Origin: Macrostomum lignano
Lineage: Eukaryota
DNA length: 64,000 nt
NCBI GenBank assembly: GCA_002269645.1
Contig: NIVC01000271.1
Coordinates: 372,001 to 436,000, forward strand
Direction: 5' to 3'
Below the pieces are notes generated by a model, which saw nothing but the letters and a program-made list of their open reading frames with translations, was not told the origin of the DNA and searched no databases. Below, one piece after another: positions 1,098-37,100 of the stretch; position 1 is the stretch's first letter, and each line of letters begins with the position of its first letter. The translations under genes and the position numbers were made by a program.

Positions 1098-4000
1098 CTA
1101 ATCTAAAAGACAAATCTTTTTATCCAGTGGTGCATCGGCTGGCTCATCGGCTAGCTCATCGCGTAGAGCATCAGGTGGCTCATCGCGTAGAGCATCAGGT
1201 GGCTCATCGCGTAGAGCATCAGGTGGCTCATCGCGTAGAGCCTCGTCACGTAGAGAATCAGGTGGCTCATCGCGTAGAGCATCAGGTGGCTCATCGCGTA
1301 GAGCATCAGGTGGCTCATCGCGTAGAGCATCAGGTGGCTCATCGCGTAGAGCATCAGGTGGCTCGTCACATAGAGAATCAGGTGGCTCATCGCGTAGAGC
1401 ATCAGATGGCTCATCGCGTAGAGCATCAGGTGGCTCGTCACATAGAGAATCAGGTGGCTCATCGCGTAGAGCATCAGGTGGCTCATCGGCTAGCTCATCG
1501 CGTAAAGCATCAAGTGGCGCATCCAGTGGTGCACCAAGTGGCTCATCGGCTGGTTCATCGCGTAGAGCATCAAGTGGCTCATCGGCTGGCTCATCGGGTA
1601 GCTCATCGGGTGGCTCATTGGGTGGCTCAGCTGGTGGCTCATCGCGTACAGCATCATGTGGCGCACCCAGTGGTGCACCAAGTGGCTCATCGGCTGGTTC
1701 ATCGCGTAGAGCATCAAGTGGCTCATCGGCTGGCTCATCGGGTAGCTCATCGGGTGGCTCATTGGGTGGCTCAGCTGGTGGCTCATCGCGTAGAGCATCA
1801 AGTGGCTCATCGGCTGGCTCATCGGGTAGCTCATCGGGTGGCTCATTGGGTGGCTCATCGGCTGGCTCATCGCGTACAGCATCAAGTGCGGCATCCGATG
1901 CTGCATTGGGCGGTGCATCGGGTGGCTCATCGTGTGGTGCATCTGACGATGTATTGGGTGACACATTAAAATGTGCATCATGTGGCACATCCGGAAGTGC
2001 ACCTAGTGGTGCACATGGTGGTTCATTAAGTGACAAATCGGGTGGTGCATCGAGTAGCGCATCCGATGTTGCACCGGGTGCTGCACTCGTTGATGCAATC
2101 GTAGGTGGCGGACTGTAATACTCGTACTTGTTTGAATCCCAGCTGACACTTGGTTTGTGCTGCTCTGAATCCGAACCGTCGGTCCAATTTAGAGCGAATC
2201 TTGGAACCATTTCGGTGTCTGGTGTCACATCGAGTGGTGCATCGAATCTTACTATCGGTGGCGAATTTCGTGCCGCATTCAATGGTGCCTCAATTGGCCC
2301 ACTAAATGTGGCGTCGTGTACCACACTGCGCTGATCGTCTCGGCAGCTCTCGTTTAAGAGGTAGTAGTTTTCTGAAGTACTCGTTGAAACCTTGCTTGCA
2401 TCACCTACTAAAGCGCCGCCTGAAATCCCAGTTTGATGCGTAATTAAAGGTTTTAAAACATTTTTCAGTAGTTCAATATCAGCATTTTCTTTCCCAACAG
2501 ACTGCTCAGAACTATTTAATGAGCTGTAACGTCTTTTGCAGACGATAATTATCACAATGGTTATAATTACAAGGACCACCAGAATCGGACAGGAAACTCC
2601 AACAATTACAGCCAAGTTAGCTGCTGGAGCTTCAGTTGAGGTCTGGCCTAGCACTTTTGCGGTCCATTTCTGTCGCGGCGTTTTCAGAATTTTCCAAATG
2701 ATCGTCTTAGCGATACAGCTGGCTGGATAGGGTCCCGCAGTGCCTCCTCTCTCAGGAAACTTTACAAGAAATGGAATCTGGCTGCTACAGCTTTTCGATT
2801 TGATTTCCGCTCTGTCCGAAGCATCCACATTCATAGTCACGCACGGACCTGTCGCGCCGTTTGACTCTCTGTAGTTATTTAAAGGTGGTTCCTGATTTAC
2901 TCCCAGCTTATTTTTCATAGCCTCTTCCGTTTTACAGAGATGAGAGGGAATTACTCACACAAAACCCTCAGATCTGAGAACAGGCTTCAATCCACATTCA
3001 CCGCTATCCTGTCTGATTAGAGAGAGCGCTGAGGCATCGGCTGCACTGTAGAACATGCCGAGACGCACTGGCTGGCTCAGGCTCAGAGGCCGTCTGTACG
3101 GATGCACTGATAGTCTGGCCGTGTCTGAAAGCGGTTTTTGATGCTCATTTTTATAGTAAAGTAGCCATGGAAATTGAAAACAAATTATCATAGTCACAAC
3201 TCACTTGCAGCAATGAGACTGCGGATCTCAGACATGCTGGAGAAGCTGGCCAGCTGAGCATCGCCTCTGATGCTGGACATTGCGGATGTCACATTGGCTC
3301 TGAGTTCGCTCACAGCGTAGCAGTTTCCGTTGAAGCTGAGCATGTCTCTGTGGCAGAGTCCAGGGAGAATCAGCAGGAGTCTCAGCTTTACCTGGGTGGC
3401 ACGTTGATACCTCGGATCCCAGCTGGCCTCCACCGTGAGCGGGAACCTAAAATAGCAATGTGATTTTAGTTTCCCAATTGTCGGAACACAAGTATTTTGG
3501 TCGAGTGGAGACCGTAGCGCAAAGTCATAGTGCTTGTTGACCTGAACGCCTTTATGCCCGAGAGATTTGACCGAAATTGAACTAGAAAGCTCCTAGAATT
3601 ATTGATTAACTTTAACCATTGTATATTTTTATACTCGTAGGCAAGGTAAAACATCTTAGATCTAACAATATATTTTAGCGTCTTGTTATTTGTACCTGAG
3701 GACATCTAGATTATACGAAAAGACCAACTAACTACCCAAACTGTATTTCCCGCAACTAGTGTTTCTATTGTAAATAAGTTAAGCAAAAGCATTTGTAAAT
3801 AATTTAATTGTTATGCTGTATTTTCTCACAGTATGGTCGCTAACTAGTCTGAGAAAGAATAATGTACGCATTTGCAGAAATGCGCACTTCATAGCAGACT
3901 GAACTGCCATGGAACTTTCATGGAACAACCATGGAATTACCGGGGACTTTCTACGGAATTACCGTTTGATGTTTTCAGACTGTTGCCACTTTTCAATTTC

Positions 4001-5332
4001 TATAGCTATTTGATCCAGTTTTTATTTCAATCGCACCCCGTGTGAGCTATATCCATGCTCGTGCTCTATGTCAGTAAAATGGGCATGACTGTTTGCTGTC
4101 TTGAGTAGGTCTCCATTACGTTTTTTTTCTCAGTTTGAAAATTTTCAAGCACCAAAGGATCTCTGTATCTCATTGACGAACATGGATTTTTGTGGTTGGA
4201 CGCGAAACATTCCAGCCGTCACGGGAATCTCTCCTCCGCTGTAGCTGATGACCAACTTTGCTGAGCCAGTTTGATTCTCTCCCGATTGTAAGCGCAAGTC
4301 GGTGTTGTCGGCAGAATCGATGAGCACTCCCTGTAGGACAAGCTGCATGTCTTCTTGAGCAGCAGAATTCTTAATGATCCACCTGCATCTCCTGTAGCTC
4401 GTATCCAACTCGTCCGTCAGCACTCTCGGAATGATGCTCTCGTCTCGGGGGAAAAAATCGTCAACTGTTATCAGCAATGTGAGTCCATTCGCGCAGTAGT
4501 GGTTGGCGCCTTGGCAACTGGAATAAACAGTGGCACAAACTGGTGAACCAGTGAAAAACATTGACCAGAGTTTTTTAAGACTGAGAGGTGAGAGCCAGCA
4601 AAAATTTAAGAAAGCGACTTTGCACGAATACAGTTAACCTTCAACTGGGCCTTGGAATCAGCAAAAAATAATGGATGTTAAGTCATCGCTTTTGGGCGGG
4701 TGCTAGAAATTGTGAAAATGAGCTTTCTAGAAAAAGCTTAGCTGCAACTGTTTGTACAATGCTGTCTGAGTGTTTGCGTAAATTGTGTTTCATACAGTAT
4801 ATGGTGGTGACCCTGATGCCATTGTCTCCGACAGGAGGAACCAGCTGGCGCGCCGCGAAACTCCTCAGGAAAGTTTTCAATTCTGCTTCAAGAGGCGACT
4901 TGGGTATGGAGGCTGTGCAGCTGACTGACACGCGAGAGCGTGCCCTGAACGTGCGCTGGGGCGTGAGAAAGAATGGGGGCGGGTGCAGACAGCTAGGGAA
5001 GGGGGTTGACTCAGACACATGGGCCGAAGGGGGGTAAGGCTCATTCACACTGCCATCAATCGAGCCACCAAAGCACACGACCAATGTACAAAGAAATCAA
5101 ATTTGATGCACAAATTGCTTGATTACACGAAATTTGGTCTTATTTAATGGCAGTGTGAACGAGCCTTAAGAATTGCAATGCACGGTCCGCCCGTCTGACC
5201 AAGAGCTCGAGTCTGCCTATCAATGGAATTATACAGAAACAACAATTGTGTATAAAATAGTTACCTAGGGCCCATCAGCAGCAGAAACACCACCAACACA
5301 ACTGTCAAAGTCGGAAATGATAAATTCAGCAT
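1098..5332 (-). CDS. Paralog A: signal peptide + CUB-like + atypical CTLD + TM + long acidic/Pro repeat tail (~860 aa)
   Basis: Exons 5332-5265 (MLNLSFPTLTVVLVVFLLLMGP), 4517-4182, 3446-3205, 3124-2959, 2868-1098. All introns GT-AG with matching phases 2,2,1,2; total 2583 nt = 861 codons. CUB-like SIIP..RCRWII..LVL; CTLD-like CHRDMLSFNGNCY..LASFSSMSE..GPCVTM..SC..FLVK; TM LAVIVGVSCPILVVLVIITIVIIIVC followed by KRR. The 4182 donor (AT/GTTCGT) is weak but aligns exactly with the donors of B and C. Confidence 0.85.
1132..1960 (-). repeat. Coding tandem repeats in the tail of paralog A (24-bp DALRDEPP units plus higher-order duplications)
   Basis: Unit CATCAGGTGGCTCATCGCGTAGAG on +, in frame within the 1098-2868 terminal exon. 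Confidence 0.9.
5037..5166. mobile_element. ~130-bp MITE in intron 1 of paralog A
   Basis: TIR AGGCTCATTCACACTGCCA ... TGGCAGTGTGAACGAGCCT with TA on both flanks; a related element lies at 35640-35757. Confidence 0.65.
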
Positions 5333-8157: not shown

Positions 8158-9830
8158 TTCGACAGTACCCCCAAGGACAGTGCCCATTTTCAAGGACTGC
8201 GTCCATCTTCAAGGACAGCGCCGATCTTCAAGGACATTGCCCAAATCAGAGACAGCGCTCATCTTCAAGGACAGTGCCCATCTTCAAGGACAGTGCCCAT
8301 CTTCAAGGACAGTGCCCATCTTCAAGGACAGTGCCCATCTTCAAGGACAGTGCCCAACTTCAAGGACATTGTCCATCTTCAAGGACAGTGTCCATCTTAA
8401 AGGACAGTGCCCATCTTCAAGGACAGTGCCCATCTTCAAGGACAGTGCCCATCTTCAAGGACAGTGCCCATCTTCAAGGACAGTGCCCATCTTCAAGGAC
8501 AGTGCCCATCTTCAAGGAGAGTGCCCATCTTCAAGGTCAGTACCCAACTCAGAGACAGCGCCCATCTTAAAGGACAGTGCCCATCTTCAAGGAGAGTGCC
8601 CATCAAGGATATGTATACAATAGTAACTTCTATTGGTCCTTGGTGCCCATCTTCAAGGACAGTACCCAACTTCAAGCACAGTGCCCAACTTCAAGGACAG
8701 TGCCCATCTTCAAGGACAGTGCCCATCTTCAAGGACAGTGCCCAACTTCAAGGACATTGTCCATCTTCAAGGACAGTGTCCATCATCAAGCACAGTACCC
8801 AACTTCAAGCACAGTGCCCAACTTCAAGGACAGTGCCCATCTTCAAGGACAGTGCCCATCTTCAAGGACAGTGCCCAACTTCAAGGACATTGTCCATCTT
8901 CAAGGACAGTGTCCATCTTCAAGCACAGTACCCAACTTCAAGCACAGTGCCCATCTTCAAGCACAGTGCCCATCTTCAAGGACAGTGTCCATCTTCAAGG
9001 ACAGTGTCCATCTTCAAGGACAGTGCCCATCTTCAAGGACAGTATCCATCTTCAAGGACAGTGCCCAACTTCAAGGACATTGTCCATCTTCAAGGACAGT
9101 GTCCATCATCAAGCACAGTACCCAACTTCAAGCACAGTGCCCAACTTCAAGGACAGTGCCCATCTTCAAGGACAGTGCCCATCTTCAAGGACAGTGCCCG
9201 ACTTCAAGGACATTGTCCATCTTCAAGCACAGTACCCAACTTCAAGCACAGTGCCCATCTTCAAGCACAGTGCCCATCTTCAAGGACAGTATCCATCTTC
9301 AAGGACAGTGCCCATCTTCAAGGACAGTATCCATCTTCAAGGACAGTGCCCATCTTCAAGGACATTGCCCATCTTCAAGGACAGTGCCCATCTTCAAGGA
9401 CAGTGCCCATCTTCAAGGACAGTGCCCATCTTCAAGGACAGTGCCCGACTTCAAGGACATTGTCCATCTTCAAGCACAGTACCCAACTTCAAGCACAGTG
9501 CCCATCTTCAAGCACAGTGCCCATCTTCAAGGACAGTATCCATCTTCAAGGACAGTGCCCATCTTCAAGGACAGTATCCATCTTCAAGGACAGTGCCCAT
9601 CTTCAAGGACAGTGCCCATCTTCAAGGACAGTGCCCATCTTCAAGGACAGTGCCCATCTTCAAGGACAGTATCCATCTTCAAGTACAGTGCCCAACTTCA
9701 AGGACAGTGCCCATCTTCAAGGACAGTGTCCATCTTCAAGGACAGTGTCCATCTTCAAGGACAGTGCCCATCTTCAAGGACAGTATCCATCTTCAAGGAC
9801 AGTGCCCATCTTCAAGGATGGTGCCCAACT
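8158..9830 (+). repeat. 19-bp minisatellite (AAGGACAGTGCCCATCTTC)n, about 85 copies with variants
   Basis: Direct reading; the 19-aa periodicity (HLQGQCPSSRTVPIFKDSA) in all three + frames is what a stop-free 19-nt unit produces. Confidence 0.95.
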
Positions 9831-10230
9831 TTGCCCAACCAAGAAATATTTCCTGCCAGTGACAAGTGTGGACACTATTGCTTACATTTTAACGGCACAG
9901 CATGACTCTTTACCTTTTAATTTTTATTTACCGCTCTCGATCGATGCTTTGCTTTCGTATTTGTTATAATAATAACAGCAGCTTGTTCTAACAAAGCTTT
10001 CTCTAGCTAAATAATCAAAGAAGAAATGCAAGCAAGGGTAAAAATCGCATTCGATTAGCTTGTATTGTCATTATTGTTACGGTACAAGAACTCAAAACGT
10101 CTTGTAAACGTTTCTACATTTTCCTAGAAACGAAGTATCTTTTTCGATAGAGTGGCCTTTGCTCATTGGTTAAATAGAACATCGCGATCAACTTTCATGT
10201 GATGCATATACAACAAAAAGGAACAAGGAG

Positions 10231-11768: not shown

Positions 11769-14700
11769 CTACTTCCATTCTTCCATTGTTTCTGATCTGT
11801 TTGAAATACTGTGAAAGGTTTCGTTCATGCTGTCCATGCCATCTGGTGCTGAACTGTAATACCTATCCGAATCAAGGCTGGTCATTCTGTTTAAGGAGGA
11901 CAACGTTGGATTAGACGTCCCGTCATGTTGTTCATCAGGTGTGGAATTTTGTGCATTTTCAGGTGTAAAATCAGGTGGTTCTTCAGGTAGGCCACCAAAA
12001 GGAAACGAGTCCGGAGGCAGACAGCTGTAGTAATTGTCTGAAAGCCAGCTGTCGTTTAGTTCGGTGCCAGATTTCGTATCGGGTGGTGCATTAGATGGTG
12101 CATCAGGTGGTGCGTCAGGTGGTGCGTCAGATGGTGCATCAGGTGGTGCATCAGATGGTGCACCAGGTGGTGCATCGAGCTGTGCATCGAGTGGTGCATC
12201 AGGTGGTGCATCAGGTGGTGCATCGAGTGGTGCATCAGGTGGTGCATCAACTGTCCCACCAGAAGTAGTCACATCGGGTTCCAGACTGTGCTGATTGGCT
12301 AAAGACGAGCTAGCGCTTGGGTTTTTTGGAGTGCCAGCAGCAGCATCGACTTTATCACTTTCTGAAGCGTCTGCTGGATTCCTAGGTTTTGATTCAATTA
12401 AAGGTTGTGAAACACTGCTCAGTTTAACATCTTCTTTCTCCACAGACGGCTCAGAACTATTTAATGAGCACAACCGTCTTTTGTAGACAATGAACACCAC
12501 AATGGTTGCAATAAGTACCAGCATAATCGGGCAGGAAACTCCTAAAATGATGGCCAATTTGCTTGGTGAAGCTTCAGTTGAGGTCCAGTCTCGTATTGAT
12601 TGAGTCGTTGCTGTTGGTGATATTCTAATACCGGTAATTAGATCAGAAGAATCTCTAGCGACAACACTAGTAGCATCAGTATCTGCAATGAAATGCATCT
12701 TAGTTGTCTGCTTCTGTTGCAGTGCTTCCATAACTCTCAAAATGACCGCCTTCGCGCTACAGCTGTCTGCATTGTATATCACTGGGTCTCCTCTCTCAGG
12801 AAACTTTACAAGAAATGGAATCTGGCTGCTGCAGCTTCTCGATTTGATTTCCGCTCTGTCCGAAGCATCCACATTCACAGTCACGCACGGACCTGTCGCA
12901 GCGCCTGAATCTCTGTAGTTATTTAAAGGTGTTCCTGATTTACTCCCAGCTTATTTTCATAGCCTCTTCCGTTTTACAGAGATGAAACAGAATTACTCAC
13001 ACAAATTTCTCAGATCCGAGAACAGGCTTCAATTCACATTCACCGCTATCCTGTCTGATTAGAGAGAGCGCTGAGGCATCGGCTGCACTGTAGAACATGC
13101 CGAGACGCACTGGCTGGCTCAGGCTCAGAGGCCGTCTGTACGGGTGCACCGACAGTCTAGCTGTGTCTGAAAACATTTTTATGCTCGTTTTTATAATAAA
13201 GTAGCCATAAAAATTGAAAACAAATTATGAGAGTAGCAACTAACTTGCAGCAATCAGACTGCGGATCTCAGACATGCTGGAGAAGCTGGCCAGCTGAGCA
13301 TCGCCTCTGATGCTGGACATTGCGGCTGTCAAATTGGCTTTGACTTTGCTCACAGCGTAGCTGCTTCCGTTGAAGCTGAGCATGTCCCTGTGGCAGAGTC
13401 CAGGGAGAATCAGCAGGAGTCTCAGCTTTATCTGTGCGGCACGTTGATACCTCGTGTCCCAGCTGGCCTCCACAGTAAGCGGCAGCCTGAAGGCAGCGTT
13501 TGTTAAATTTTAGCGGGGTTTTTATATTTTTACTTAGGGCTGGCTGCTCGATGATTGCTCGCATCTATCCCTTCAGCCTATCAGTCAGACCAAGGTTTGT
13601 CGGCTTTTAAAGCCTGACTTGTGCCTTTCCTGTGCTGAATTCGCTGCACAGTCTGACTTATTCTACTCGCACTGTCTTTTAAGTTGAAGCGGCTTGTGAT
13701 TGGCTGATGTCGTTTTCTCTTATTTCTCTTCCCATCATCTCTCTACTCGGTAAATATTTGATTATTTATTCTGAAGGGAGCTGGAACACCGGAGGGACGC
13801 AGGATTGAGCGCGCATGACATTAGCACGCATTTTGAAACTGCTCTACGTGACACAAGCGCGCATTATCACTTCAAGTGGCAGCTTACTTTACTTTATCGT
13901 TCGTCTTTGTATTTGATCCAAAAATATTCAAAAACATTCCCGACTGGTTTCGTATGCCTGTTTAATGCAAGATTTTTTTCTCTTGGGCTTGGGTCACAGT
14001 CATCGACTTATCTTTGAGGTGACTGCCGTCAAAACTGTCTGCGCTCTTGTGTCACTGCCGCATTCGCGCGCTTCTGCCTGTGCGCGCTTATGTCAAATAT
14101 TGTAAAAATATACGCAATGGCAGTAGCGTCTTGCGCGCTTATTCAGCCCTCCCCACCGGGGTACAGAGGTCACCCTCTTGGAGGCGTTTTTAAAATCAGC
14201 CTCTAGAATCTTTAACTATCTTGAGCAAATAAATTACCCGTTTGATGTGCTTAGCCATGTAATTTAAACTCATAAACGATCCTTACTCATGAGCAACATG
14301 TGCATTTTTCAGTACTTACAGCTGCCGGATTGGGCGGACGAGAAAGAGCCCTGCAGTTGCCAAAAGTTGCCCTCCCGAGCTGTTGAGGACAAGATCCGCC
14401 TGACTTTTCACGTTGTTAATGGACAGAGAAGATCCAGCTGTTGAATTTATCGGTTCTGCCAACAAGACAAGTTTTTGCATGTCATTTTCTGTTGCAGCAG
14501 CCTTGATGCTCCATCGGCAGGTTCGATTGCTCAACGGTCTGTTGTCATTGGTGTCGCCAAGAACTTCGGGAATGATTTTTACGTCTCCATTGTTGATGTC
14601 AATTGTAATTGGACTGACGACTCCGTTTGTGCAGTAGTATGTTTCGGCCTGGCATTCGGATCTATGCGTTTGTGTGGGTTATTTCTGTTTGGATACTTTT

Positions 14701-16078
14701 TATGATCAGATCAAATGCAAATCGAACGAGCAGAGCAAAGTGTGAAAAAAAGAGCTTACTTGAGACAGGCGAGTAAAAGCCAGCAGCTAGCTAGGGCGCA
14801 GGTTCGAATCTAGAATAGCGAAAACAATTTTTATTGCGATAATGAATCTCATTGTTTAGCTTGCAAGGTGTACAGCAGCCCCAACTTTTTAATCGTCAAA
14901 CCCTCTGCGCCAAATGGACGGCCCTCATTGGCAAGAACTCCAAAGTCCTCAGTCAATTTTCGTGCACGAGTCTCAAACTAAGGAGACCACTTTTTAATTA
15001 GTCGCGTTAACGGCTGAGTTTACTCTGAACTAGGGGTGTTCGGGGTTCGGGGTCGGGTCGGGTTTTGGTACCGGGTTCGGGGTCGGTGTAGGGTGTTCGG
15101 GTCGGGTATCGGGTTCGGGGTTAGGTGTTCGGGTTTTCGGGGTTTTCGGGTTCAAAGGATAAAAAAACTTTTTAAAAATAAATTTCTCCTAGCCGTTATG
15201 TAACGCTTTTAAGCATAAAAAGGCGAATATTTAAACTTCGAAAATGCTTGAATTTAAGTTTTCAATTACAAATTTAGGGTTTTAGGGATGAAATCTATGA
15301 ATCTATGGATTCTGGCTGGCCTCTGGACTATGCTTGTGGATTTCAAAATCCCTTTATTTTTAACTACAAACATTTTTATCAAACACATGAATTAAAGATG
15401 TAAGGGTGTTTAACCTTTATTTTCCAATTCTTCATTAAGCTACACTCGGATGTTGCGCTAACAATGACAACTTAAACCCAAGTTGGTAAACATTAGGATA
15501 AGTGGATGTTAAAGTCAATGCTTAGATCTTAAGAATGAGGAGTCAAATTATAGGGAGGAGAGGAGTGAAGACTTAAAATTGCTAGCTGATGACTAGAAAT
15601 AGGAGTAAGGAGCCAGGGCTGCAATGAAAACGAGAAGTAGACTACTAGAAGTACCTCTTGACGAGCAACTCCCTTCAGTTGTCACTCTTGGAAAATCACG
15701 GAAAGCCTGCGATGAAGCGTTCTACTTTTAGGGAAAGTTCGGGGTCGGGTCGGGTCGGGTTTCGGTCCGGGTTGGGTTTTGGGTTCGGGGTCCGTACCCG
15801 GAAAAAATGGAAACCCGAACACCCCTACTCTGAACACAGGTAAGGAAAATGCGCTAAGCAATTAATCTGTAAAAATATGTCTAGTACAATTCGTTTTTTG
15901 ACTAAACTAATCATTTTAGTCACTACAAAACAATTGGATCAATAAATAAAGTTGAAAATATTGTTATGCTATACTACAGTATTTGACAAATTGATTTTTT
16001 AACCAGCAAAATTTGCTCAAATAGCTCCTAAGATATTGGAGCACAAAAATAAAAGCCCGATGACTACAAACTTACCAT
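11769..16078 (-). CDS. Paralog B: signal peptide + CUB-like + atypical CTLD + TM + DAPP-repeat tail (~648 aa)
   Basis: ATG 16078-16076 directly followed by GTAAGT; exons 14809-14760, 14661-14320, 13486-13245, 13166-13001, 12912-11769; total 1947 nt = 649 codons. N-terminus MIRTCALASCWLLLACLKSECQAETYYC; TM LAIILGVSCPIMLVLIATIVVFIVY-KRR. Confidence 0.85.
15031..15827. mobile_element. Non-autonomous hAT-like element in intron 1 of paralog B
   Basis: TIR TAGGGGTGTTCGGG ... CCCGAACACCCCTA; perfect 8-bp TSD CTCTGAAC (15023-15030, 15828-15835); subterminal TCGGG(T) repeats. Confidence 0.88.
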
Positions 16079-25065: not shown

Positions 25066-26864
25066 TTACACAATTCGCACACCGGAAACTTCTGACTTTG
25101 ATGGCTTAACAACCGCATAGCCTCCAAGAATGTTACCGCCCGCAGTTCGTATGAACCAAAGTTTCTGTACAGAGTTTGGCAGATAGTCAAAAAAGTAGGT
25201 CAAAATAACCCACTTGACAAACAGTAAAATTAATAACACAAAAATCGGCAGCAGAGTGATGATGGAGCCATAGAGAGCTGCATTTTCCCAGCGAGAACTT
25301 TTACTCTGCAGTATCTTTCCAACCGAATTAAAGACGCCGGTTTCTTCTAAAAGACGAATTCTCTGCAACAAATCATATTGATTGCAGCTGCTACGCTCCG
25401 ATGCTTGAGCAGTGATGAAGTCAGGCTCCATGATCAGCGAAGGCCTTGGGACGCTGCAGTTGCCGAAACCCAGAGCCGGTTTGCCGTCGTCTGCCGCTTT
25501 TAGTAGAAAGGCGCACGGACCGGCTGCGTTGCTGACAGAATGCCTGCTAAATCAAAGTTCAAAAAATTGTTATTACTCGACGAATTATACCGGCCCGAGA
25601 CCAAAGCGGTGTCCTAAGACTCAAATTGGCGATATGAGACTTAAAGCAGCACCCTGAGACCCAAAGTAGCGCCCTGAGACCCAAAGTAGCGCCCTGAGAC
25701 CCAAAGTAGCGCCCTGAGACCCAAAGTAGCGCCCTGAGACCCAAAGTAGCGCCCTGAGACCCAAAGTAGCGCCCTGAGACCCAAAGTAGCGCCCTGAGAC
25801 CCAAAGTAGCGCCCTGAGACCCAAAGTGGTGCCTCAATACCCAAAGTGGTGCCCTCTGAGACCCAAAGTGGCGCCCTGAGACACAAAATGACATCCTGAG
25901 ACCCAAAGTGGCATCCTGCATTAGCCCAAAAGTGGCGCCTTGAGACACAAAGTGGCATCCTGCATGAGACCCAAATTGGCGCCTTGAGACACAAAGTGGC
26001 ATCCTGCATGAGACCCAAAGTGGCGCCCTGAGACCCAAAGTGGTACCTTGAGACCCAAAGTGACACCTTGAGACCCAAAGTGGCGCCTTGAGACCCAAAG
26101 TGGCATCCTGCATGAGACCCAAAGTGACACCCTGAGATCCTGACGATCACCCTGACGACTCAGTGGCACTCCTACACAAAAATGCCGCACCTCAAGTGTT
26201 TGCATATACTTTAATTGTAGTAAAGTACAAAATGACACAAATCATAAACAAGAGCATTTTTAACTCACGTCAGCTCCGACAAATTTCCAATGGGAACCAG
26301 TCCGCAGGCGCCGCTCTGATTTCTGCTCAGGGCAAGCAGGATGTCATCAGCTGGTTCGTAGAGCAAGCCAACTCTGATTGATGGGCTGTGCTCGAACAAC
26401 TGGTGCAGCATTTTGCCTGAAACTTTGAAGGCAAATGAGTTCGTAAAGCTTTCACTCCAATATTCTCCGTTGAGTCAGTGTTCCAAAAATATGTTTTATA
26501 TGTGCATAAATGAAACCCAAAACTCACTGACAGCAAGAAAGTCATCAAGTTCATCTGTACTGGAGAAGCTGGCCAGCTCAGCATCATCTCCGATGACGGA
26601 GCTGATGAAGTCTGTCAAGCTCATGCTTGCATCGCTTCTATAGTAGCAGTTGCCATGGAAACTGAGCCTGCCCCGACTGCAAGCTGTCCGATTAGCAGCC
26701 TCAGCTGTTTCGCACCTGCAGATCATGATAATAAAATGATAAAAGGTAATGCAGTTTAATATTTAAGAAAATGAGTTTTTTAATAATTTCTTTGCTTACT
26801 TTGTGAAGACATTTAACGAAATGCAGAGAAAAAACGAACAACCGAATGTACATATTTTGCGCAT
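25066..26864 (-). CDS. Paralog D: short CUB-less form, signal peptide + atypical CTLD + TM (~292 aa)
   Basis: Exons 26864-26800 (MRKICTFGCSFFLCISLNVFT), 26715-26528, 26416-26269, 25543-25066; phases 2,1,2 as in the other paralogs; total 879 nt = 293 codons. CSRGRLSFHGNCY..LASFSSTDE..GACGL..GPCAF..GNC; hydrophobic ALYGSIITLLPIFVLLILLFVKWVILTYFF. Confidence 0.8.
25632..26135. repeat. 20-bp minisatellite (GAGACCCAAAGTAGCGCCCT)n with variants, in the last intron of paralog D
   Basis: About nine near-perfect units then degenerate 20/31-bp variants; explains the overlapping ORFs here. Confidence 0.92.
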
Positions 26865-27524: not shown

Positions 27525-27722
27525 TCAGCCTTGACATCTCAGCGATTCCCCCCGTAAGCCTTGAAATCTCAGCAATTCCCCCAGTAAGCCTTGACTTCTC
27601 AGCAATTCCCCCGTAAGCCTTGACATCGCAGCAATTCCCCCCGTAAGCCTTGACATCGCAGCAATTCCCCCCGTAAGCCTTGACATCGCAGCAATTCCCC
27701 CCGTAAGCCTTGACGTCTCAGC
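27525..27722. repeat. ~30-bp tandem repeat (AAGCCTTGACATCGCAGCAATTCCCCCCGT), 6-7 copies
   Basis: Direct reading. Confidence 0.9.
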
Positions 27723-28161
27723 AAATTGGATTCGAGCAATTCAGCTCTATATAATTAACAACGATTCGAGCGAAACAAAAGTTTCTCCGGTTTTTTTCAA
27801 AAAATTATTAGTAAAGAAACAAATTTTCTTGATAAACTATGTAGTACTAGTGCTTTTATAAAAATAACAGCTTATATTGTTACGAGCGCTAAAATTTAAA
27901 GTTATTCATGTTTACGTGCGCATATTCAGTGAGTACCTAGCGGAGCTACAGAAAAACCTTTGACAATGAATCTGAATTCTGTCACAATGGTAAGCTAGAG
28001 ATAAAAAATTCATTAAAAGCTTTGCTTTCATTTAAAAACGAAGGGGACCTGATGCACACGCAGTAGAAATGAACAAAATGAGCAAATGAGCAAATATCCC
28101 ATAAGCTTCTATGAAAATTAGTTAGCCTTAGAGCAGTAAAGCAGCGACAGCTCAAGCTCTT

Positions 28162-29298
28162 TTGTACATTACATTACTTTACATTACAACGACGCTAGGG
28201 TCGGGGGGCACTAGCGCGCACACGATTGCGAAAAAGAGGGGCAGGGCAGGTCGCAGCAGTCTGGGGAGTCAGTCCAATTGCCTCCAGGTCGGCAACAAGT
28301 GTCTCCCGGAGCGTCTGGGTCCGCCCTTGGCCGCGGCGGAACCGTTCGGTCGGCGGATGCAGAATGGCCAGTCCAAGCAGGTTGTCGTCGCCGCGGGTGA
28401 ATCGCCGCAGGCAGTGTCCCAGCAGGGCCTGGCGGCGCCGGCGGAGGGTGGCGCTGAGGGACGGCGATTTCGATCTCGCCATCAGCTGGGCCGTCGAGAG
28501 GACGGTCGGGTAGCGCACGCCCAGCACCTTGCGCAGCAGGTTGCGGTGCAACGCGTCCAGGGCCCGTTCTCGCGCGGTTGTCATCGGGACAGCCTCCATG
28601 CCGTAGAGAAGGATCGGCTCTACAGCGGCGCGGAACAGGTGGATCTTCAGGTCGTCACGCGCTCCGGAGGTGAAGATCGGCCTGAGGTGGTGCATGGCGC
28701 GCCAGGCCTGGGTCCTCCTGTCCGCGATGATCGCCTCTGGGCTCATCACGAGGGTGCCTAGGTAGCGGAAGTCGCTGCACGTTGAAATGGCCTCGTCGTT
28801 GGGCAGGGTCAGCGGAGGGGCATTGTCAGCACCCACGTGCAGCACCTCCGTCTTGCCTGCGTTAATCTGCAAGCCGATCCGGGCGCCTTCCTCGGAGAGT
28901 CGAGTAAGAGCGTGCTGGGCTGCTACAGGGTCTCGGCACAGCAGCGCGATGTCAGCAGCGTAGGCGAGGGCTGGGAGCGTCACGGCAGTGTGGCGGGAGC
29001 TAAGCTGAGGCGCGAGGACAAAGCTGTCGTCGTCTCGAAGGCAGCGGCGCAGGATGTAGTCAACAGCCAGAATGAAAAGCAGGGGAGATAGCGTGTCCCC
29101 TTGCAGCACCCTGGAAGTGGTATCGAACTCGTCCGTGGGGCCATCGCTGGAGTCGACAAACGCCTTGGAGTTGTGGTACAGGTCCATAACTGCCGTCACC
29201 AGGGTGTCGCGGACGCCGTACTGAGCCAGGAGCCAGGCTAAGGCCGTCCTGCTGACAGAGTCGAAGGCCTTCCGGAAGTCAACCAAGACGATAGACAT
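28162..29298 (-). mobile_element. 5'-truncated RTE/RTEX-like non-LTR retrotransposon (RT domain and C-terminus)
   Basis: 367-aa ORF: VDFRKAFDSV, LQGDTLSPLLFI, YAAD (YADD altered), GLQINAGKTE, FRYLG, RRRRQALLGHC; (TGTAA)-type 3' tail at 28162-28190; visibly far more GC-rich than its flanks. Confidence 0.92.
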
Positions 29299-29488
29299 CT
29301 AAAATGTCTATATTTTGTAAGTCTACGCTCGTATCTTTTGTATCTTTTTGTATCTTTTCTGTATCTTTTTGTATCTTTTGTCTATCTTACTAAAAAGTCT
29401 ATCTTTTGTACAGCCATGGTTGAAAGCACTGTTCTTTAAGCCTCTGAGGCCTGGAGGCTTCGTTTTGAAGAAACTGGGACCCTCGAAC

Positions 29489-29745
29489 CGAAGTCTAATC
29501 AAGAGGATCAATTACAGATCTTGTAAGGGAGTTCTACAAGTTGGCCGAAATATGGATACTAACAGGACGTAATGAAGTCTAATCAAGAAAATCAATTACA
29601 GATCTTGTAAGGGAGTTCTACAAGTTTGCCGAAATATGGATACTAACAGGACGTAATGAAGTCTAATCAAGAGGATCAATTACAGATCTTGTAAGGGAGT
29701 TCTACAAGTTTGCCGAAATATGGATACTAACAGGACGTAATGAAG
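29489..29745. repeat. Three tandem 85-bp units
   Basis: GAAGTCTAATCAAGAGGATCAATTACAGATC...CAGGACGTAAT starts at about 29489, 29574 and 29659. Confidence 0.9.
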
Positions 29746-30017
29746 CCTGCCCAAAGCTAGACAGATGTCTTTATTGTCTGTCAAAAAGAGAATTAGAGAG
29801 TTATCCAATAGTGATAAAACAGAACTATAAATCGCCCAGACTCCATGCATCATCTTGAAACCAGTCGAGGAGCCAGTTTACACTGAGATGGGCCTTACAG
29901 CTAAAATGAATAGCGAAACGATGCGAAACTGTCAAGCATGGACGAGTAGCCAAACCAATCAGAACCATGGATGAATAATATAGCTGAATCGCCAAAAGCT
30001 CGATTTTTGGTCCCAAG

Positions 30018-30233
30018 CCAAGGACAACTTGATAACTCAGGACCGGAAACGAGCCAATTCATGGCGAAAAAAGTATGAGGCTCGTTTAAAAGCATTGTTC
30101 TATGGCCCATCCGTATGCGCATGCGCTTTCGTAGCTTTGGATCGGCCATAGAACAATGCTTTTAAACGAGCCTCATACTTTTTTCGCCATGAATTGGCTC
30201 GTTTCCGGTCCTGAGTTATCAAGTTGTCCTTGG
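30018..30233. repeat. Perfect 90-bp inverted repeat with a 36-nt loop
   Basis: 30018-30107 (CCAAGGACAAC...TTCTATGGCC) is the reverse complement of 30144-30233 (GGCCATAGAA...GTTGTCCTTGG). Confidence 0.92.
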
Positions 30234-30243
30234 TAACTCAGAA

Positions 30244-30560
30244 TGTCGACACCATGTCGACAGAATCAGTCAATGGACAGGGCTGACGGATGAGCAAGAG
30301 AGGCTAATTGATGAGGAACTACGCAATCCTACGCCGGAAGATCACGTTGGAAACCTGTTTCGTGAATTGACCGAAGAAGAAGAAGCTGGCCTACATCATG
30401 TGGAGCAAGAAAGTAAACGGAAGTCGACGGTTAAGCAAACTGAATTGCATATTCGCAAACTAAAAGTTTCTACGCGCGGAGAATTTACCTGATCACATCG
30501 AGAATATGCCAGTTAGGTATCTCAACTCCTATCTACGCCTGTTCTTCGTTCAGCTTAACT
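30244..30560 (+). mobile_element. Truncated, frameshifted Crypton-like N-terminal ORF relic
   Basis: EEEAGLHHVEQESKRKSTVKQTELHIRKLK / FLRAENLPDHIENMPVRYLNSYLRLFFVQL aligns with ELEQLVSEIEDTAASKSVTKATEYYVGKLQSFM..DLATSTPREIDSLLRYFYGSL of the 55532-56227 ORF; bracketed by CCATAGAA (30146) and CCATAGAC (30731). Confidence 0.6.
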
Positions 30561-31197
30561 TTACGAGCTCGCAATCAATCAAACTAAGGTCAGAAGGTAT
30601 ACCGCGTGAGAAATCGAAAGACTTGTCAATGACTATATATCTAATGTTTATCTCATGTTAATGTTAATATTTCATGTTAATGCTAATATTAGCTCAAAAT
30701 ATACACATAGTTTCTTTGTGCCCACTTGGGCCATAGACAACTTTTGCTGGCGGGCAGACATCGTTGCTTTCACCCTCGTTTCGGCAGTTAGGACTGCTAC
30801 AATATATGGTATCACCCCCATGGATTCATTTACTTTGTCGACAGAGCGGCTGAGGGCTGCATTTATTGGCCGAGGCTTTCCCAAAGGGATTAAATGTTTT
30901 ACCTAATGATTAATGAAGGTAGAGACAGGTAGAGACACACAGGAAGTTCTACCAAAATTCATCAAGGACATGATGCAATCCAGAACTGCTCTAAGGCTTC
31001 GAATCGGTACCTAGTTGGGCACGAGAATATAACTCATGTCCCGTAGAAAGTTTTATTAGCTTTTCGAATTTACATGTAGTTTTTTCTTATTTTGTATTTA
31101 CTTGTTATGCAGTTTAATAGCTTAATAATATGATAAAATAAAAAAATCAGCAACCTCGATTTGAGCGAGCATTTAATAATATTAACTATTTAAATAT

Positions 31198-31221
31198 TCT
31201 TATTATTATTATTATTATTAT

Positions 31222-31254
<33 letters not shown>

Positions 31255-31277
31255 GTTATTTTATTACTACTATTATA
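31198..31277. repeat. (TTA)n microsatellite
   Basis: Direct reading. Confidence 0.9.
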
Positions 31278-32769
31278 TGTTGCATATTTGAGTAAATGAA
31301 ATGAGTGAACAGAGATCTCAAACTGTCGGTGTCAGGCAGAAACGTATATTGGTAGTACAGACGTAAGTAGTAAAGCATGCTGTACAGTGACAAAAATTGT
31401 CTAGTTATGCCACAGTGGGTGTTCTATGGATGCGCGGAAGAAGTTTCTAGAGCGTTACTAGATTTTGGCATTCGGGAGAGCATAGAAATTTCTAGAGTAT
31501 GTGGGAAATAGCTATTAGTAAATTTTATAACCATGCAACTATTGTATTTGTATACATGCATAGACATCTAGAATGCATGTCTGCTGGAATTACATATATC
31601 GACACTAAAAAGAAATAGTAATTATTACAGGGTAATTTTCTTATCTTAGCGATGCCACCAAGTTGCCAAGTTGTGACGGTTTTTTTGTTCTTCTGGGGAA
31701 TCGATCTCACTGTTATGCCACCAATTTGTTATTTATTGTTTGGGGATTAATTTCACGCGTCACCAATTTGGGATAGGGGTCTTGGGGGGTTCTTGGAATG
31801 TATGGAGAATTTACTATTCTAATGCGAGTGTGAATAGTCTAAATACTCAGGTAGCGTTCAGTGTCGGAGCGGCAAGACACTATTCCTAACTAAACTAATT
31901 AAATTCAGTCGAAAGAGCTTCGCGGGGATCAGTGTTGCCTGGAGAATGTGGGTACGCGCTATTTCTAAGGGGGACTTATTGCCCCCTTAATGGGTAATTT
32001 TAGCGAGGGCAGAACGCTTAATAGGGATTGGGAAAGAGGCAAAACGCTAATAGAATAGAGAGCTAGGGTTAGGCAAGACGCCTGGGAGCCTGAGGAGACA
32101 GCGCGTCTGGGGGATAGGCAATTAAAACGCTATTTTTAAAATGAAATAATTCAATATAATATTTCAATATTTCAATAATATGATGAGGACGCACTTTTTC
32201 CCAAATCCTGCGCTAGCACATGGGCTCGAAACTTACTAGCCTACTAACAGTGGGCGATGGGCATTTTTATCCTTTTTCTGCGATTTGTCATGGAATCTAT
32301 ACTAGATATAATGTCTGGCCATACTAGTAGTCATAATAACATAGGCATTGTATTTTGGGTCATAAATCATCGCTTTCGAAGCTGGTCTGACAGCCACCTG
32401 CGCCTCACTCAGTGTTGAGACGGGCGCCAGATGGTCTGAGAGGATGCGGGCGGTAGCTTTTTTCTCATCATTTTGACAGGCCATCAAGATTTATGAGGTC
32501 AGAGCCTATTGTTCGGATTCACTCAAGCGTGTGACAGCTTTGACAGCTATGCATTTTACCCCTAAAAGTACCTTGGGATTAGCGATTAGCAATTTCTCTT
32601 CATTATCTTCACTTTCTATTTAATAAGAGCTTTCTAATGTATATTTTTTCATTAATTTCTGTCAATCCTACGCGAAAAGTCATAAATCATTTTGTTGCGA
32701 TTTTGAGTGATTTATGGCCGCACCTGTCATCTTTTTACGACCCTGTGGGAACTGATAGGATCTCTCGGT

Positions 32770-32900
32770 CACGTGATTCTGGGTAGCAACAAGCTTAGCC
32801 AATCAGAAAATTCGGCGCTCATTTTAACAAAACGGCTCAGCCAATCAGAATCGACGTGTTCCATTATAACAAACTGCGGTCCAGTTGGCGGCTATTTAAA
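32770..32900 (+). promoter_or_regulatory. Possible LTR-like promoter (two CCAAT boxes then a TATA-like box)
   Basis: GCCAATCAG twice (about 32797 and 32830) and CTATTTAAA (about 32892), inside a GC-richer unexplained block; no partner LTR found. Confidence 0.25.
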
Positions 32901-34959
32901 CCGGAGTTTTTGGCCCGCTCGGACTAACTCTTGCTCGGGCCCAGCACGCAACTTCTGGTTCCCGAAGCGCGACCGTCGTTTCTTGATCCCCGGATTGCGA
33001 CTTCCCCCATCATCATCAAGGACGTATCCCCCGGTCGTCAGCAGTGAACATCAAGCGAAGATCATCACCTGCTAGCTATCAGCGAAGATCGTGACAGCAT
33101 CATCCCGAGTCTACAGCTACAGAGCATCAAGCCGATTTGGTCACTGTGGATTACCTGGTCTCCGGCTGTTGAGTTTCTGATTGGTTGGGTGAGAGGCTAC
33201 CTAGACTTGCTTGATTGGGTGATCCCCTATCTGTCTCCTGTTTCAGTAGCTGAATTAGGCGCACACTTTTGCTCATTTTGTTCAGTAGTGCTGTTACTGA
33301 GGCAGAAGTCATTCAACAATACTGCTAGTAGTCTAAACTCCAATTCAATCTGAAGTGTGAAGTGATCTAAGGAGAAGGTTAAATCCAACAGTTATTTTTA
33401 TCGGTTTTATTTCTTTGTTCGCCGATGGCTCAGATAAGTAGCTAAGCTAGTAGGCGCCGGTCACAGTGGACCAATGGCCAGGCAGTTCTCAGTCGATCAA
33501 TCAATCAAATCAGTGAGCAAAACTGCCAGAAGTGCAGAATCGGCGCCAGAGATGTACTTTGTGCACTCTAGGTTAGCCAAGCGGCTCGGGTAATGAATCA
33601 TGCGGTCTCTGAAGTTCGAGTTAGTCTATCATCAGCGCTATGAGAGGCTAGTTGGCGCGTTGAAGGCCAAAAGTACCTATCTTCGTATTTAGCAATGTAA
33701 TAGTACATGTAGCTACCCCATAGACTCGCCACTGCAAGAATCCCCTGCACAAGTCCCCTCTGTACCTGCATGGCCAATGCAATCTAGTCCCAGCAGTGTC
33801 CCTTAAAATCGGCTATGACTTCGAGATTGACAGCAAAAAGACACTATAGTTGGCAGATAAGTACTAAGCCCCTTCTAGTCGGAAGCCCGATTTTGAAAGT
33901 TTCGGTGTGGTGAGCCAGGGCGTACGAGCTGGTGGCAGCGGGTTAGTTATAATCTGCGGATTAGCTAATCTCTACCTTCAAAATTCTCCCTGCTTGTCTC
34001 TCGCTGTCCCTCTCTTAGCTATAGGACCTAGACTGCTCGCCACAGATCAAGCTACCATGGGGCTGACTATCTGACAGGAGTGGGGGGCCAGGACTCTAAT
34101 TGATTTATTTCTGAGCCTGAGGTCCGAAGGCTTCCCTAACAAGGGACCCGAAGGTCGAAACCCATCAAATAATATAATATTCAATATAATACAATATAAT
34201 ATAATATTTTATAATTCAATACTTACTATTATGCTATAATAATGCTATAAAATCGCAAGGTAAAAGCAAGTTGCGCTGTCCGTATATTTTCTGATTCTTT
34301 TTAACAGAGCAAAGCCGTGAGTGTGGTATTTAATAAAACAAAGTTTTGACGATTCGCAGAGATATAATGTTTATCTATAAAGTATAAAAAAGGATTTGAT
34401 TATATGAAAAAGGATAGTAAGATATCTAATAGAAATTTGATAAGGTATTTTTAACGCAGATGGTGTAATAACGATCCTAGCAAAAGAAAAGACTATAATT
34501 ACGAACTACTTAACACTAATTACTACAAACGAGAATTATTACTATTACACTATAGCAAATATGAATCATTTAAAAATGAATTTCTGTTTATTTTATAAAA
34601 TGTTTTTCAATTGCGAATTCGCTGGTCTTGAATAACATTCGGAATCAGGGTTAAAAAACACGATGTAACGAGTACGGTATATTTACTTAGCGGAGGCTAT
34701 AAAGTACCGTACTAGTAGTAGTAATAGAATAATACTAGAATCTTCAGTGTATGAATTTAATAACGTATGATCTGTTAGTACCCTGGAATAAATGACGCAC
34801 GAAATAGTCAAGGACTACCTCAAGCAGTAACATACATCTACTTAAGTTGTCCTTGGAAATAGTATCAACTAAAAATTAATACGAGTGTATCTTGATTAAA
34901 GTTTTAAGAATACATTTGCTTTCTATTGAATTATCAAACAATTACAAAGATCAAAGGAC

Positions 34960-37100
34960 TTAAACTACGCTCGTATCTGGTAGCATTTTTATATTTGCAT
35001 CCAACTGTCCGAGATTCGCACTGTCCCTCTTTACTGTTCGAAGTCGTGATATTAAGTGCAAGAAGCAAGGACACACAGCTACTTGCAGTAAACATGCAAT
35101 GGCGACAGCCAAAGCACGAGCCCAAATTCCTGCACAATTCTCCTCCGGATATTGTTTTGTTTGATTGCGAAGCATCCCTCCTGCCTGCAGAGGATATGCG
35201 TCTTTTTCCATCGACAAAACTTTTGGAATAATTTCTGGACAGAAACGGCTAATTATTCTTTTATCACTACGAGCAACTTGCGGAAATTTTATGAGCGCCA
35301 GAATCGAAGCGTCACAGCTACCGAACTCAACCAGCGCTTTGTCTGTTACATCCAAACTGAGATGAGCGCATGGACCGACAACAGTATTTGAGATTCTGAA
35401 ATAGTTTTACCCGTAGTAGCCAATAAATGCTTTTATTTGTGACATGTTTTGGTCCCAATTTCAAAGAGTTGTAGCTGGAGCCCCTCAGCGCACAAGAGAG
35501 GTATTTTTTAAAAGCTTGAAATCTCATATCGTCTAAGTCTTGATATCTAGCTAGTTGCACTTTTCTCTAGCTCGAAAACTTCACATTGTCCAGGATGTCA
35601 AAGATCGAGCTCGTGAAGTTGTTAAAGTATGAAGTTTTAAGCCTCGCTTACACCGAGGCCAAATAGGCTTTGTGTGTTTGACCAAATTCTGTGTGATCAC
35701 CCAGACTTCATTCCTTTTACATCGGTCGTGTGATTCTATGGCAGTGTGAATGGGCCTTTAGGTGGTTTATGAACTTTCGAGCTTGTGAAATATGGTTATT
35801 GCAGTGTTTTAACCTAACTCAAACAGATTATTTCGATGACTCACTTAAATGTCTCAAGTGTAGATAACGGTTCTAGACCGCATCCTGCACTATTGTTTCC
35901 TCTTTTTAGCATGGACACAGTTTGATCCTGACCATCGGAGCCGAGGAACATGCCAAGGCGGAGTGGAGTGGTTGACTCAGATTTAGAGGCCGTCTGTACG
36001 GGTACTCAGACTCTCGAGCGATATCTACAGAATATTTAATAAGAATGTGTATTGCTCGTGGACTGAACTTTATATTAAACAAGCTGTTGTTTTTACTACA
36101 ACTATTTAGCTTTAAGAATATACATCTTTAATATTATTCTACATTTACCCTCACGACACTTTTACTAGCAGGGGATGACAGGGCCAAATAAAGTAATAAC
36201 ATATTACTAAAAATTCGTAAGATGATAAATTTATCAATCATTGATTCGTAGTAGTTCTACGAATTTTTTCAGAACTTACTTGCTGCAACGAACTCGTTAA
36301 TTTCTGCCATGCTGGCGAAGCTGGCCAGCTCGACATCACCTTCAATAGTAGACAAAGCTTCAGTTAGATTTTGTTTAAAGGCACTCACGGCGTAACAGCT
36401 ACCATTGAAGCTGAGCATGTCATTGTTGCATATTCCTGGAATCGGGATCAGATAGCGAAGTCGAATTGGCGTTCTGCTCTGGATTTTTGGGTCCCATTTG
36501 ATTGTGTTAGTGAAGAGGTTTCTGAAACCATAGGAAAGCAGTTTGTTTGGTTAACAGAAAACGTCGGTATAGTTTTTAACACTATTTGGAAAACTTTATT
36601 CCTGACCTTCGACGCAGTGGGTACAGTCGAAACAATCCACGCGTTGCAACAAACGCATCTTCTTGCGAAACAACAATCAAGTCTTTACGGGCTGTTTCAT
36701 TTTCTCTGACCGCGACTTGCTCGTCTGGAGTTGTCTGAATACGTAACAATTTGAAGACTCTTCCAGGTGCTGGAGGTTCGAATACGAATTAACCATCTGC
36801 ATCGTCTGTAGCTTTTGTGCTGCGTGTCCAGCTCGTTTGGAATTCTGGGCACAATCGTTTCGTCCCGATGATAGAAGTTGTCGAGTCCTACACTAGTTGT
36901 CAGACCGTTGACGCAATAATGATTGGCCGCGTCGCAGCTGCCGTGATGAAGACACATATTTAATTAGTTTTGTATTTTTAATTTATGTAGATTCACTTCA
37001 TTGCTTGCTTGACTTACAATTTGACGCAGCAAAAGTTACTCTCAAAAAATAGCATCAAATAGATTACCACGATATGGGACCATCGAGGAGAGGCAAACTC
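34960..37100 (-). pseudogene. Paralog E: CUB-like/CTLD/TM gene with two frameshifts
   Basis: Exons 37100-37018, 36937-36607 (331 nt, should be 3n; TGA at 36697), 36521-36280 (242 nt as in A-C), 36024-35845 (180 nt, contains a CCACT duplication; 175 nt restores phase), 35395-34960. Homologous sequence resumes in the shifted frames (ENETARKDLIV..GLFRLYP; LRLGMF..AGCGLEP). ATG exon not found. Confidence 0.8.
35640..35757. mobile_element. Small MITE related to 5037-5166, in the last intron of E
   Basis: AGCCTCGCTTACACCG ... GGCAGTGTGAATGGGCCT degenerate TIRs. Confidence 0.5.

Follow-up and report, generated by a model that had tools for sequence, protein, structure and literature searches.

What do the tandemly repeated, lectin-like genes on one contig of the flatworm Macrostomum lignano encode, and do they form a variable immune or recognition locus, as a first-pass annotation of the DNA had proposed? 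The genes lie in a 64,000-nucleotide (nt) stretch of contig C271 (NIVC01000271.1), C271:372001-436000, which we call the window and whose own numbering is used below wherever no contig is named. Five paralogs, A to E, occupy its minus strand between positions 1098 and 36937. From the architecture and the mode of evolution that we document here, we infer a Macrostomum-specific tandem family of type I membrane glycoproteins that are probably cell-surface recognition or adhesion receptors, in which a variable CUB-like domain would set specificity on top of a constant CTLD, or C-type lectin-like domain.

We built the gene models by aligning the paralogs together with their flanks and placing canonical AG/GT sites, which are present at every splice site named here, and we searched the complete assembly of 764 Mb in 5269 contigs for further copies. 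In the DV1 line, from which this assembly derives, there are extra large chromosomes, and many blocks of its assembly are duplicated (PMC5730564); hence, the locus is found in two further copies, on contigs C413 and C3412. The five genes of the window are as follows.

1098 to 5332, minus strand: gene A, 860 amino acids, from splice sites and open reading frame
11769 to 16078, minus strand: gene B, 648 amino acids, from splice sites and open reading frame
17179 to 20031, minus strand: gene C, 624 amino acids, matching GenBank PAA86620.1
25066 to 26864, minus strand: gene D, 293 amino acids, without a CUB-like exon, its splice sites and phases as in A to C
34960 to 36937, minus strand: gene E, a pseudogene in the window copy, with frameshifts relative to the intact copy on C413

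Each module is carried by one exon, and the intron phases are fixed. In every copy, they are 2 between leader and CUB-like exon, 2 between the CUB-like and a 242-nt exon, 1 between the 242-nt and a 166-nt exon, and 2 between the 166-nt and the last exon. The 242-nt exon recurs in A (3446-3205), B (13486-13245), C (18806-18565), and E (36521-36280) and the 166-nt exon in A (3124-2959), B (13166-13001), and C (18487-18322), whereas the CUB-like exons of A, B, C, and E measure 336, 342, 345, and 331 nt, respectively. The models of A to D are open from ATG to stop, and the copies align to one another by tblastn at E values of 1e-36 to 1e-78, a similarity far beyond chance that points to common descent. 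The first-pass annotation had listed five co-oriented paralogs with these two exon sizes and conserved phases, one member without a CUB domain, and one pseudogene; all of these statements are borne out, the CUB-less member being gene D, in which the leader is spliced straight to the lectin exon, and the pseudogene being gene E, which carries two frameshifting insertions.

Besides its 242- and 166-nt exons, gene A comprises a candidate signal-peptide leader (5332-5265), a CUB-like exon (4517-4182), and a last exon (2868-1098) encoding the end of the CTLD, a stalk, a transmembrane segment, and an acidic, proline-rich (DEPPDALR)n tail with coding repeats of 12 and 48 nt at 1133-1943. Residues 24-369 are identical to the M. 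lignano UniProt entry A0A1I8J314 (P0002). The single leader exon has relatives upstream of other A-like copies; because of this conservation and its strong hydrophobicity, we preferred it to a start at an in-exon ATG (MFFTGSPV...) just 5′ of the CUB-like exon, which we rejected. Genes B and C share a different 5′ arrangement, in which the ATG stands at the very end of the 5′ exon and is followed by a 50-nt signal-peptide exon. For gene B, these elements are the ATG at 16078-16076 at the end of exon 1 and the leader at 14809-14760, followed by the CUB-like exon (14661-14320), the two shared exons, and a last exon (12912-11769) that encodes a (DAPP)n tail. Its CTLD has a serine in place of the second hairpin cysteine (NGSSY), and its 5′ exons match GenBank PAA86619.1 (P0003). 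The remaining exons of gene C are 20031-20017, 19575-19526, 19232-18888, and 18235-17179, and its tail consists of three 33-residue repeats (a 99-nt repeat at 17183-17488). The model of gene C is letter for letter that of GenBank PAA86620.1 (BOX15_Mlig016100g1), which comes from an RNA-seq-guided annotation (PMC5730564), and of UniProt A0A267GKR5, where the name "CUB domain-containing protein" is, as for other family members, the automatic label of the source.

Gene D is assembled from a leader (26864-26800), a shortened CTLD exon of 188 nt (26715-26528), a middle exon of 148 nt (26416-26269), and a last exon (25546-25066) that encodes a transmembrane segment and then a short basic tail of 36 residues. 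Since only an 84-nt intron, which keeps phase 2, separates the leader from the lectin exon, the gene truly lacks a CUB-like exon. Both C413 and C3412 carry this leader, at 86-95% identity; gene D has no exact match in the protein collection searched and hence no public model that we could find. Gene E retains a CUB-like exon (36937-36607), the 242-nt exon, a middle exon (36024-35845), and a last exon (35395-34960). A 4-nt insertion at 36745-36742 in its CUB-like exon leads to a premature TGA downstream, and a 5-nt CCACT duplication lies at 35971-35967 in the middle exon; in this copy, gene E is a pseudogene. The C413 copy (293.8-295.9 kb) has neither lesion, and all four of its exons read through without a frameshift, although it is only 87.6% identical to gene E of the window. 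On C3412, gene E is apparently disabled as well, given the same pattern of tblastn exon matches; the lesions themselves were inspected in the window copy.

The array extends well beyond the window. As the first-pass annotation suspected, copies continue left of position 1, where tblastn finds seven more at C271:318-366 kb, and contig C271 thus holds 12 copies in 91 kb (318-409 kb). No copies were found on C271 to the right of gene E, and by these matches the window is the right-hand end of the tandem array. Elsewhere in the assembly, the 242-nt lectin exon has at least 138 matches on about 30 contigs, mostly in clusters. Protein collections yielded seven relatives by word-index search and 55 listed by an exhaustive profile search, 25 of them at E≤1e-10. 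All seven word-index matches and all 10 of the distant profile matches that we looked up come from M. lignano, in keeping with the lineage-specific tandem family that had been proposed, and on present public data the family appears confined to Macrostomum. Our literature search for a Macrostomum CUB/lectin family found no published description and surfaced only unrelated papers on adhesion glands. The family is therefore uncharacterized in the searchable literature, lineage-specific tandem families of lectin-like receptors as such being already known.

Neither of the two extracellular domains can be recognized with standard models. The Pfam CUB and Lectin_C profiles have no match in the exon pieces, the spliced ectodomains, or ten distant family members, and Lectin_C has none even at E≤1. 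We therefore took domain identity from structure prediction, using AlphaFold2 with family alignments of 37-40 sequences and comparing the models with the PDB by Foldseek. For the family member P0006, the prediction has two domains, with a predicted local distance difference test score (pLDDT) of 86 and a predicted template-modeling score (pTM) of 0.84; the ectodomain of gene A (P0002) reaches a pLDDT of 81.6 and a pTM of 0.81. The lectin half of P0006 matches DCIR, DCAR2, dectin-2, and CLEC5A at target-normalized template-modeling (TM) scores of 0.6-0.7 and a best probability of 1.00, and its N-terminal domain matches CUB1 of neuropilin-2 (6gh8; TM score 0.56), the meteorin CUB, PCPE-1, and Neto2. 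Gene A likewise matches NKR-P1B, mincle, and CD69 (TM score 0.68) as well as CUB2 of C1r (TM score 0.45), and Ly49 is also among the CTLD matches. A family sequence profile reaches CTLDs of known structure over their N-terminal half only, CD69 at E 1.7e-4 and others, including DC-SIGN, up to 1e-2. The predictions support a CTLD preceded by a CUB-like β-sandwich, and the case is stronger for the former than for the latter. Of the folds named in the first-pass annotation, both are backed by AlphaFold2 and Foldseek, and neither is detected by hidden Markov model search against Pfam.

The cysteines of the CTLD include the hairpin pair (C..FNGNCY) and a C2-C3-like pair (GPC...KSC); the helix-1 cysteine is absent, and VRLGMF stands where WIGL is expected. 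No EPN, QPD, or WND motif occurs in the ectodomains of A to D. The domain is best called lectin-like, and a canonical calcium-dependent sugar site would not be expected. The CUB-like exon encodes three cysteines, a C-x6-C pair and one in a C-x-W motif on the second strand, instead of four. Each protein has one strong hydrophobic transmembrane window in addition to the leader, in agreement with the single-pass topology suggested earlier. The tails of A to C, 224-472 residues long, are acidic and proline rich and are built of in-frame tandem repeats. A regular-expression scan of the A to D tails found no immunoreceptor tyrosine-based inhibitory, switch, or activation motif (ITIM, ITSM, ITAM). 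Isolated YxxΦ, PxxP, and acidic matches in the tails fall inside low-complexity repeats, and we set them aside as evidence. Inspected by eye, the transmembrane segments of A to C contain no charged residue, and that of gene D has one lysine near its cytoplasmic end.

Which of the two domains varies is answered by comparison across the family. Over 268 pairs of family proteins, mean identity is 22% in the CUB-like domain versus 45% in the CTLD, and the CUB-like domain is the less conserved in 259 of the 268. By this measure, it is the CUB-like domain, and not the lectin domain, that is the variable module. Within the window, the CUB-like exons of A, B, and C can barely be aligned (54-59% identity in nucleotides, 35-42% in amino acids), whereas their 242-nt exons are 88-93% identical. 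The outcome is a repertoire whose members diverge strongly in CUB-like domain and tail and remain similar in the CTLD.

Part of this similarity seems to have been exchanged between genes, as seen most directly in one block shared by A and B.

2668 to 3451, minus strand: block of gene A shared with gene B (12712-13491), 90% identical over 784 nt

The block comprises the CTLD-coding exons with their two introns. It begins at the acceptor of the 242-nt exon and reaches 200 nt into the last exon, and its ends are sharp. Identity along it is 92.6, 94.0, and 84.0% in the exons and 84.6 and 96.6% in the introns, as against 54% in the CUB-like exon and 41% in the intron upstream. Because the introns are as similar as the exons and the ends are sharp, the block indicates a recent gene conversion or a duplication of the CTLD cassette. 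Gene C is different, in that its introns are not conserved relative to A and B despite the similarity of the 242-nt exon, so that this exon similarity would be due to selection, short conversion tracts, or both. In the 242-nt exon, paralogs and contigs have variant sites in common in a mosaic pattern. For example, the C413 copy of gene B departs from gene B of the window by 1 of 342 nt in the CUB-like exon, but in the 242-nt exon by 15 of 237 sites, and on C413, B and its neighbor C have GFKGNCYAVSKVRANVTAAM in common.

The copies to the left of the window add a second form of exchange. Three of those at C271:337128-360133 have CUB-like exons 95-96% identical to that of gene A, and their stalk, transmembrane, and tail regions are 79, 25, and 50% identical to those of A; in copies Le and Lf, the A-like CUB-like exons are joined to unrelated 3′ exons. 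This pattern suggests that modules have been shuffled within the array. A join between paralogs also appears in a public model, PAA86619.1 (BOX15_Mlig023892g1), in which exons 1-4 of gene B (leader, CUB-like, and 242-nt) are followed by exons 5 and 6 of gene A (166-nt and last). It spans window positions 11769-16204 and 1098-3124, with a join across about 10 kb that stays in frame because the intron phases are common to both genes, and its tail repeat is shorter than that of the genome. A real B/A hybrid gene lying left of the window is ruled out, since the sole B-type CUB-like exon on C271 is that of gene B, and the model must therefore reach from B to A. It may be an annotation merge or reflect real splicing between paralogs, the latter being weakly supported.

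Loss of genes accompanies these exchanges. On C271, copies Lc, Lg, and E are disabled, and two of the left-hand copies are fragmentary. The C413 copy of B (310775-311011) has an in-frame stop in its 242-nt exon, while its CUB-like exon encodes the same protein as in the window. The second hairpin cysteine of B has been lost separately, being serine in the window and tryptophan on C3412. Between B and copy Lb, there are six copies on C271 versus two on C3412, and these two contigs also disagree in how many A-like copies they have. The birth-and-death dynamics of the earlier proposal are thus seen here, in the form of pseudogenes and of copy numbers that differ from one duplicated contig to another. 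Overall, the array has evolved by tandem duplication, by module exchange or gene conversion centered on the CTLD exons, and by pseudogenization. The duplicated contigs are themselves related in a mosaic way: spacer DNA on C413 is about 97% identical to the window, and on C3412, the C-D spacer is 82-88% identical, whereas the D-E spacer (27700-34900 versus C3412:84229-91430) is 100% identical. The CUB-like exon of B is 99-100% identical over its copies on C271, C413, and C3412, which are 0-1 residue apart, and gene C is 3.5-6% apart.

Pairwise ratios of nonsynonymous to synonymous change (dN/dS, Nei-Gojobori) lie mostly at 0.04-0.56 in the CUB-like and CTLD exons, so that the genes are constrained; the only values approaching 1 come from comparisons with about 5-11 substitutions. 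Nonsynonymous change was not found in excess in the recognition domain, dN/dS being below 1 in all well-sampled comparisons, and at pairwise resolution, the alignments give no sign of pervasive positive selection.

We favor the view that proteins of the A to D type act as cell-surface recognition or adhesion receptors. Ligand specificity would come from the variable CUB-like domain, including a hypervariable loop, and the conserved CTLD would offer a common scaffold or a partner-binding surface, for protein rather than for calcium-dependent sugar. The disordered tail would contact intracellular partners, and gene D would be a CUB-less variant with the constant module only. Several points weigh against this view. 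Neither domain reaches the Pfam threshold, so the folds are assigned from predicted structures and a single weak profile match. The similarity of the 242-nt exon of C to those of A and B may reflect purifying selection instead of conversion. What look like three haplotypes are duplicated blocks in the assembly of one inbred line and not population alleles. Finally, the cytoplasmic repeats could be partly misannotated, public models backing only the tail of C and the C terminus of A.

A more specific but less likely alternative, and the one that the first-pass annotation put forward, is a variable innate immune locus, with pattern-recognition receptors in activating, inhibitory, and decoy forms. 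Tandem birth and death with pseudogenes and copy-number differences would suit such a locus, as would one strongly variable module and a predicted CTLD fold of the kind found in many immune receptors. There is a precedent for the domain combination in Caenorhabditis elegans, which has 283 clec genes and in which CLEC-4 as well as CLEC-41 and CLEC-42 combine CTLD and CUB; the last two bind bacteria and are antimicrobial (PMC8051790). Like these, the flatworm proteins unite both kinds of domain in one extracellular protein, belong to a large lineage-specific expansion, and are candidate recognition or effector molecules. The nematode proteins, however, are secreted, have no membrane anchor, and contain several CTLDs and CUBs that standard models detect, whereas the flatworm proteins have one CUB-like domain and one CTLD, both invisible to Pfam, with a transmembrane helix and a long repeat tail, and no sequence homology between the two was detected.

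The receptors of the natural killer (NK) gene complex (NKR-P1, Ly49, CD69, CLEC) offer a second comparison. They are among the best structural matches of our predicted models (target-normalized TM scores of 0.65-0.68), their CTLDs also lack calcium and sugar motifs and bind protein in NK receptors, and they too form tandem arrays that evolve by birth and death and gene conversion. They differ in being type II proteins without a CUB domain that signal through ITIMs or charged transmembrane residues, whereas the flatworm proteins are type I with an N-terminal CUB-like domain, and those signaling motifs are absent in A to D. Among type I proteins, layilin, CD302, and chondrolectin have an extracellular CTLD, and attractin combines CUB and CTLD; these genes are conserved, exist in single copy, and encode further domains of other kinds, and none is known to form a tandem lineage-specific family. 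We detected no sequence relationship between them and the flatworm family. The CUB domains of neuropilin, C1r, and PCPE have the β-sandwich fold predicted for the flatworm domain (Foldseek probability 0.99-1.00, target-normalized TM scores of 0.45-0.56), which differs from them in having no Pfam match and three cysteines in place of the usual two disulfide pairs. In topology, domain order, repeat tails, signaling motifs, and homology, the locus belongs neither with the NK-complex arrays nor with the nematode CLECs.

Against an immune role stand the lack of ITIM, ITSM, and ITAM sequences in the A to D tails and of charged residues in the A to C transmembrane segments, the absence of EPN/QPD and WND and with them of a canonical glycan site, and dN/dS values below 1 in all well-sampled comparisons; moreover, no expression or induction data for the family turned up in the M. 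lignano supplementary tables searched. The motif scan and dN/dS gave no support to an immune or allorecognition role or to a division into inhibitory, activating, and decoy members, and these proposals are left unsupported rather than refuted.

For a lineage-specific surface family of this kind, a role in reproduction is an equally natural alternative to one in immunity. The proteins would then be carried on sperm or egg, in the female antrum, or in mate interaction and would turn over under sexual selection in an outcrossing hermaphrodite. In other animals, proteins of gamete recognition and of seminal fluid include some with CUB and lectin-like domains. The restriction of the family to one lineage and its fast-evolving modules fit such a role, and two studies report rapid evolution and a lack of detectable homologs for reproduction-related genes of Macrostomum (PMC7336406, PMC8662610). 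Nevertheless, none of the nine family gene identifiers (Mlig016100, 017487, 023892, 010820, 031203, 005992, 033614, 028521, and 029619) occurs in the M. lignano supplementary tables on reproduction and germline that were searched, a weak negative, as the tables may be incomplete or use other identifiers. On balance, we consider a reproductive function unlikely.

Less probable again is an elaboration of the exchange patterns described above, in which a homogenized CTLD cassette would be joined in new combinations to very divergent CUB-like exons and tails, placing a variable module on a constant one. Short-tract conversion, unequal crossing-over, or splicing between paralogs could bring this about, and products of the last would stay in frame because all copies share their intron phases. 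Each haplotype, and possibly each cell, would then have its own repertoire for recognizing non-self, microbes, or mates.

Two further readings fare worse. On the first, most copies would be duplicates without function, undergoing decay in a genome that is rich in repeats and partly duplicated, which would account for the broken copies (E, Lc, Lg, and B on C413), for a gene B without a conserved cysteine, and for the repeat-filled surroundings. Wholesale decay is contradicted by the long open frames kept in A to D, by constraint (dN/dS of 0.04-0.5 in the CUB-like and CTLD exons), by conserved splice sites and phases, and by RNA-seq-based public models for C and parts of B and A, and we regard it as very unlikely. 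On the second, the array would serve allorecognition or histocompatibility, and its alleles would be highly polymorphic. Only the general picture of tandem surface receptors with one variable domain fits this reading, which is scarcely credible in view of the near identity of the B CUB-like exon over three contig copies, the 3.5-6% divergence of C, and dN/dS below 1, and we know of no fusion or rejection biology in this solitary worm.

The DNA between and around the genes is rich in repeats.

8172 to 9831: satellite of 19 bp in 87 copies, between A and B
21100 to 22500 (approximate): dispersed repeat of older date in the C-D spacer, with matches of 70-81% identity on at least 40 contigs
25635 to 26137: satellite of 20 bp, 24 units, in intron 3 of gene D
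28195 to 29298, minus strand: reverse-transcriptase fragment of a retroelement between D and E (Pfam RVT_1, E 3.3e-15), with a 97%-identical copy on contig C268
32180 to 34170: interspersed element in the D-E spacer, about 2.0 kb long and represented on other contigs by at least 40 copies at 93-97% identity and with the same sharp ends

The last of these looks like a young, probably non-autonomous transposon. Dense insertion of transposable elements had been claimed both between and within the genes; the first part stands, through the reverse-transcriptase fragment, the 2-kb element, and the dispersed repeat, and within genes, only the satellite of gene D could be verified. To the right of the array, an open reading frame at 49961-50416 (plus strand) encodes an integrase zinc-binding domain (Integrase_H2C2, E 1e-10) and another at 55532-56233 (minus strand, 233 amino acids) has a weak match to a QRICH1 domain; both are probably remnants of mobile elements. 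A perfect palindrome occupies 38712-46178, its arms (38712-41576 and 43315-46178) being 100% complementary in three blocks on either side of a spacer of about 1.7 kb. It is GC rich, contains 21-nt repeats, and could be a foldback element or an assembly artifact. A satellite with a 25-bp unit and a long trinucleotide run are found at 59048-59497 and 61445-61920, respectively. Rfam and tRNA scans found no RNA genes in the window.

Where invertebrates owe specific recognition to a receptor system, expanded families of lectin-like receptors are the leading candidates, and free-living flatworms are almost uncharted in this respect. The present family has stayed "hypothetical" because it is invisible to standard domain searches. 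Its organization leads to a testable hypothesis on where specificity would sit, in an animal that is amenable to transgenesis, RNA interference, and in situ methods. Should the proteins turn out to be ordinary adhesion molecules, the models would still provide a useful annotation of an uncharacterized gene family.

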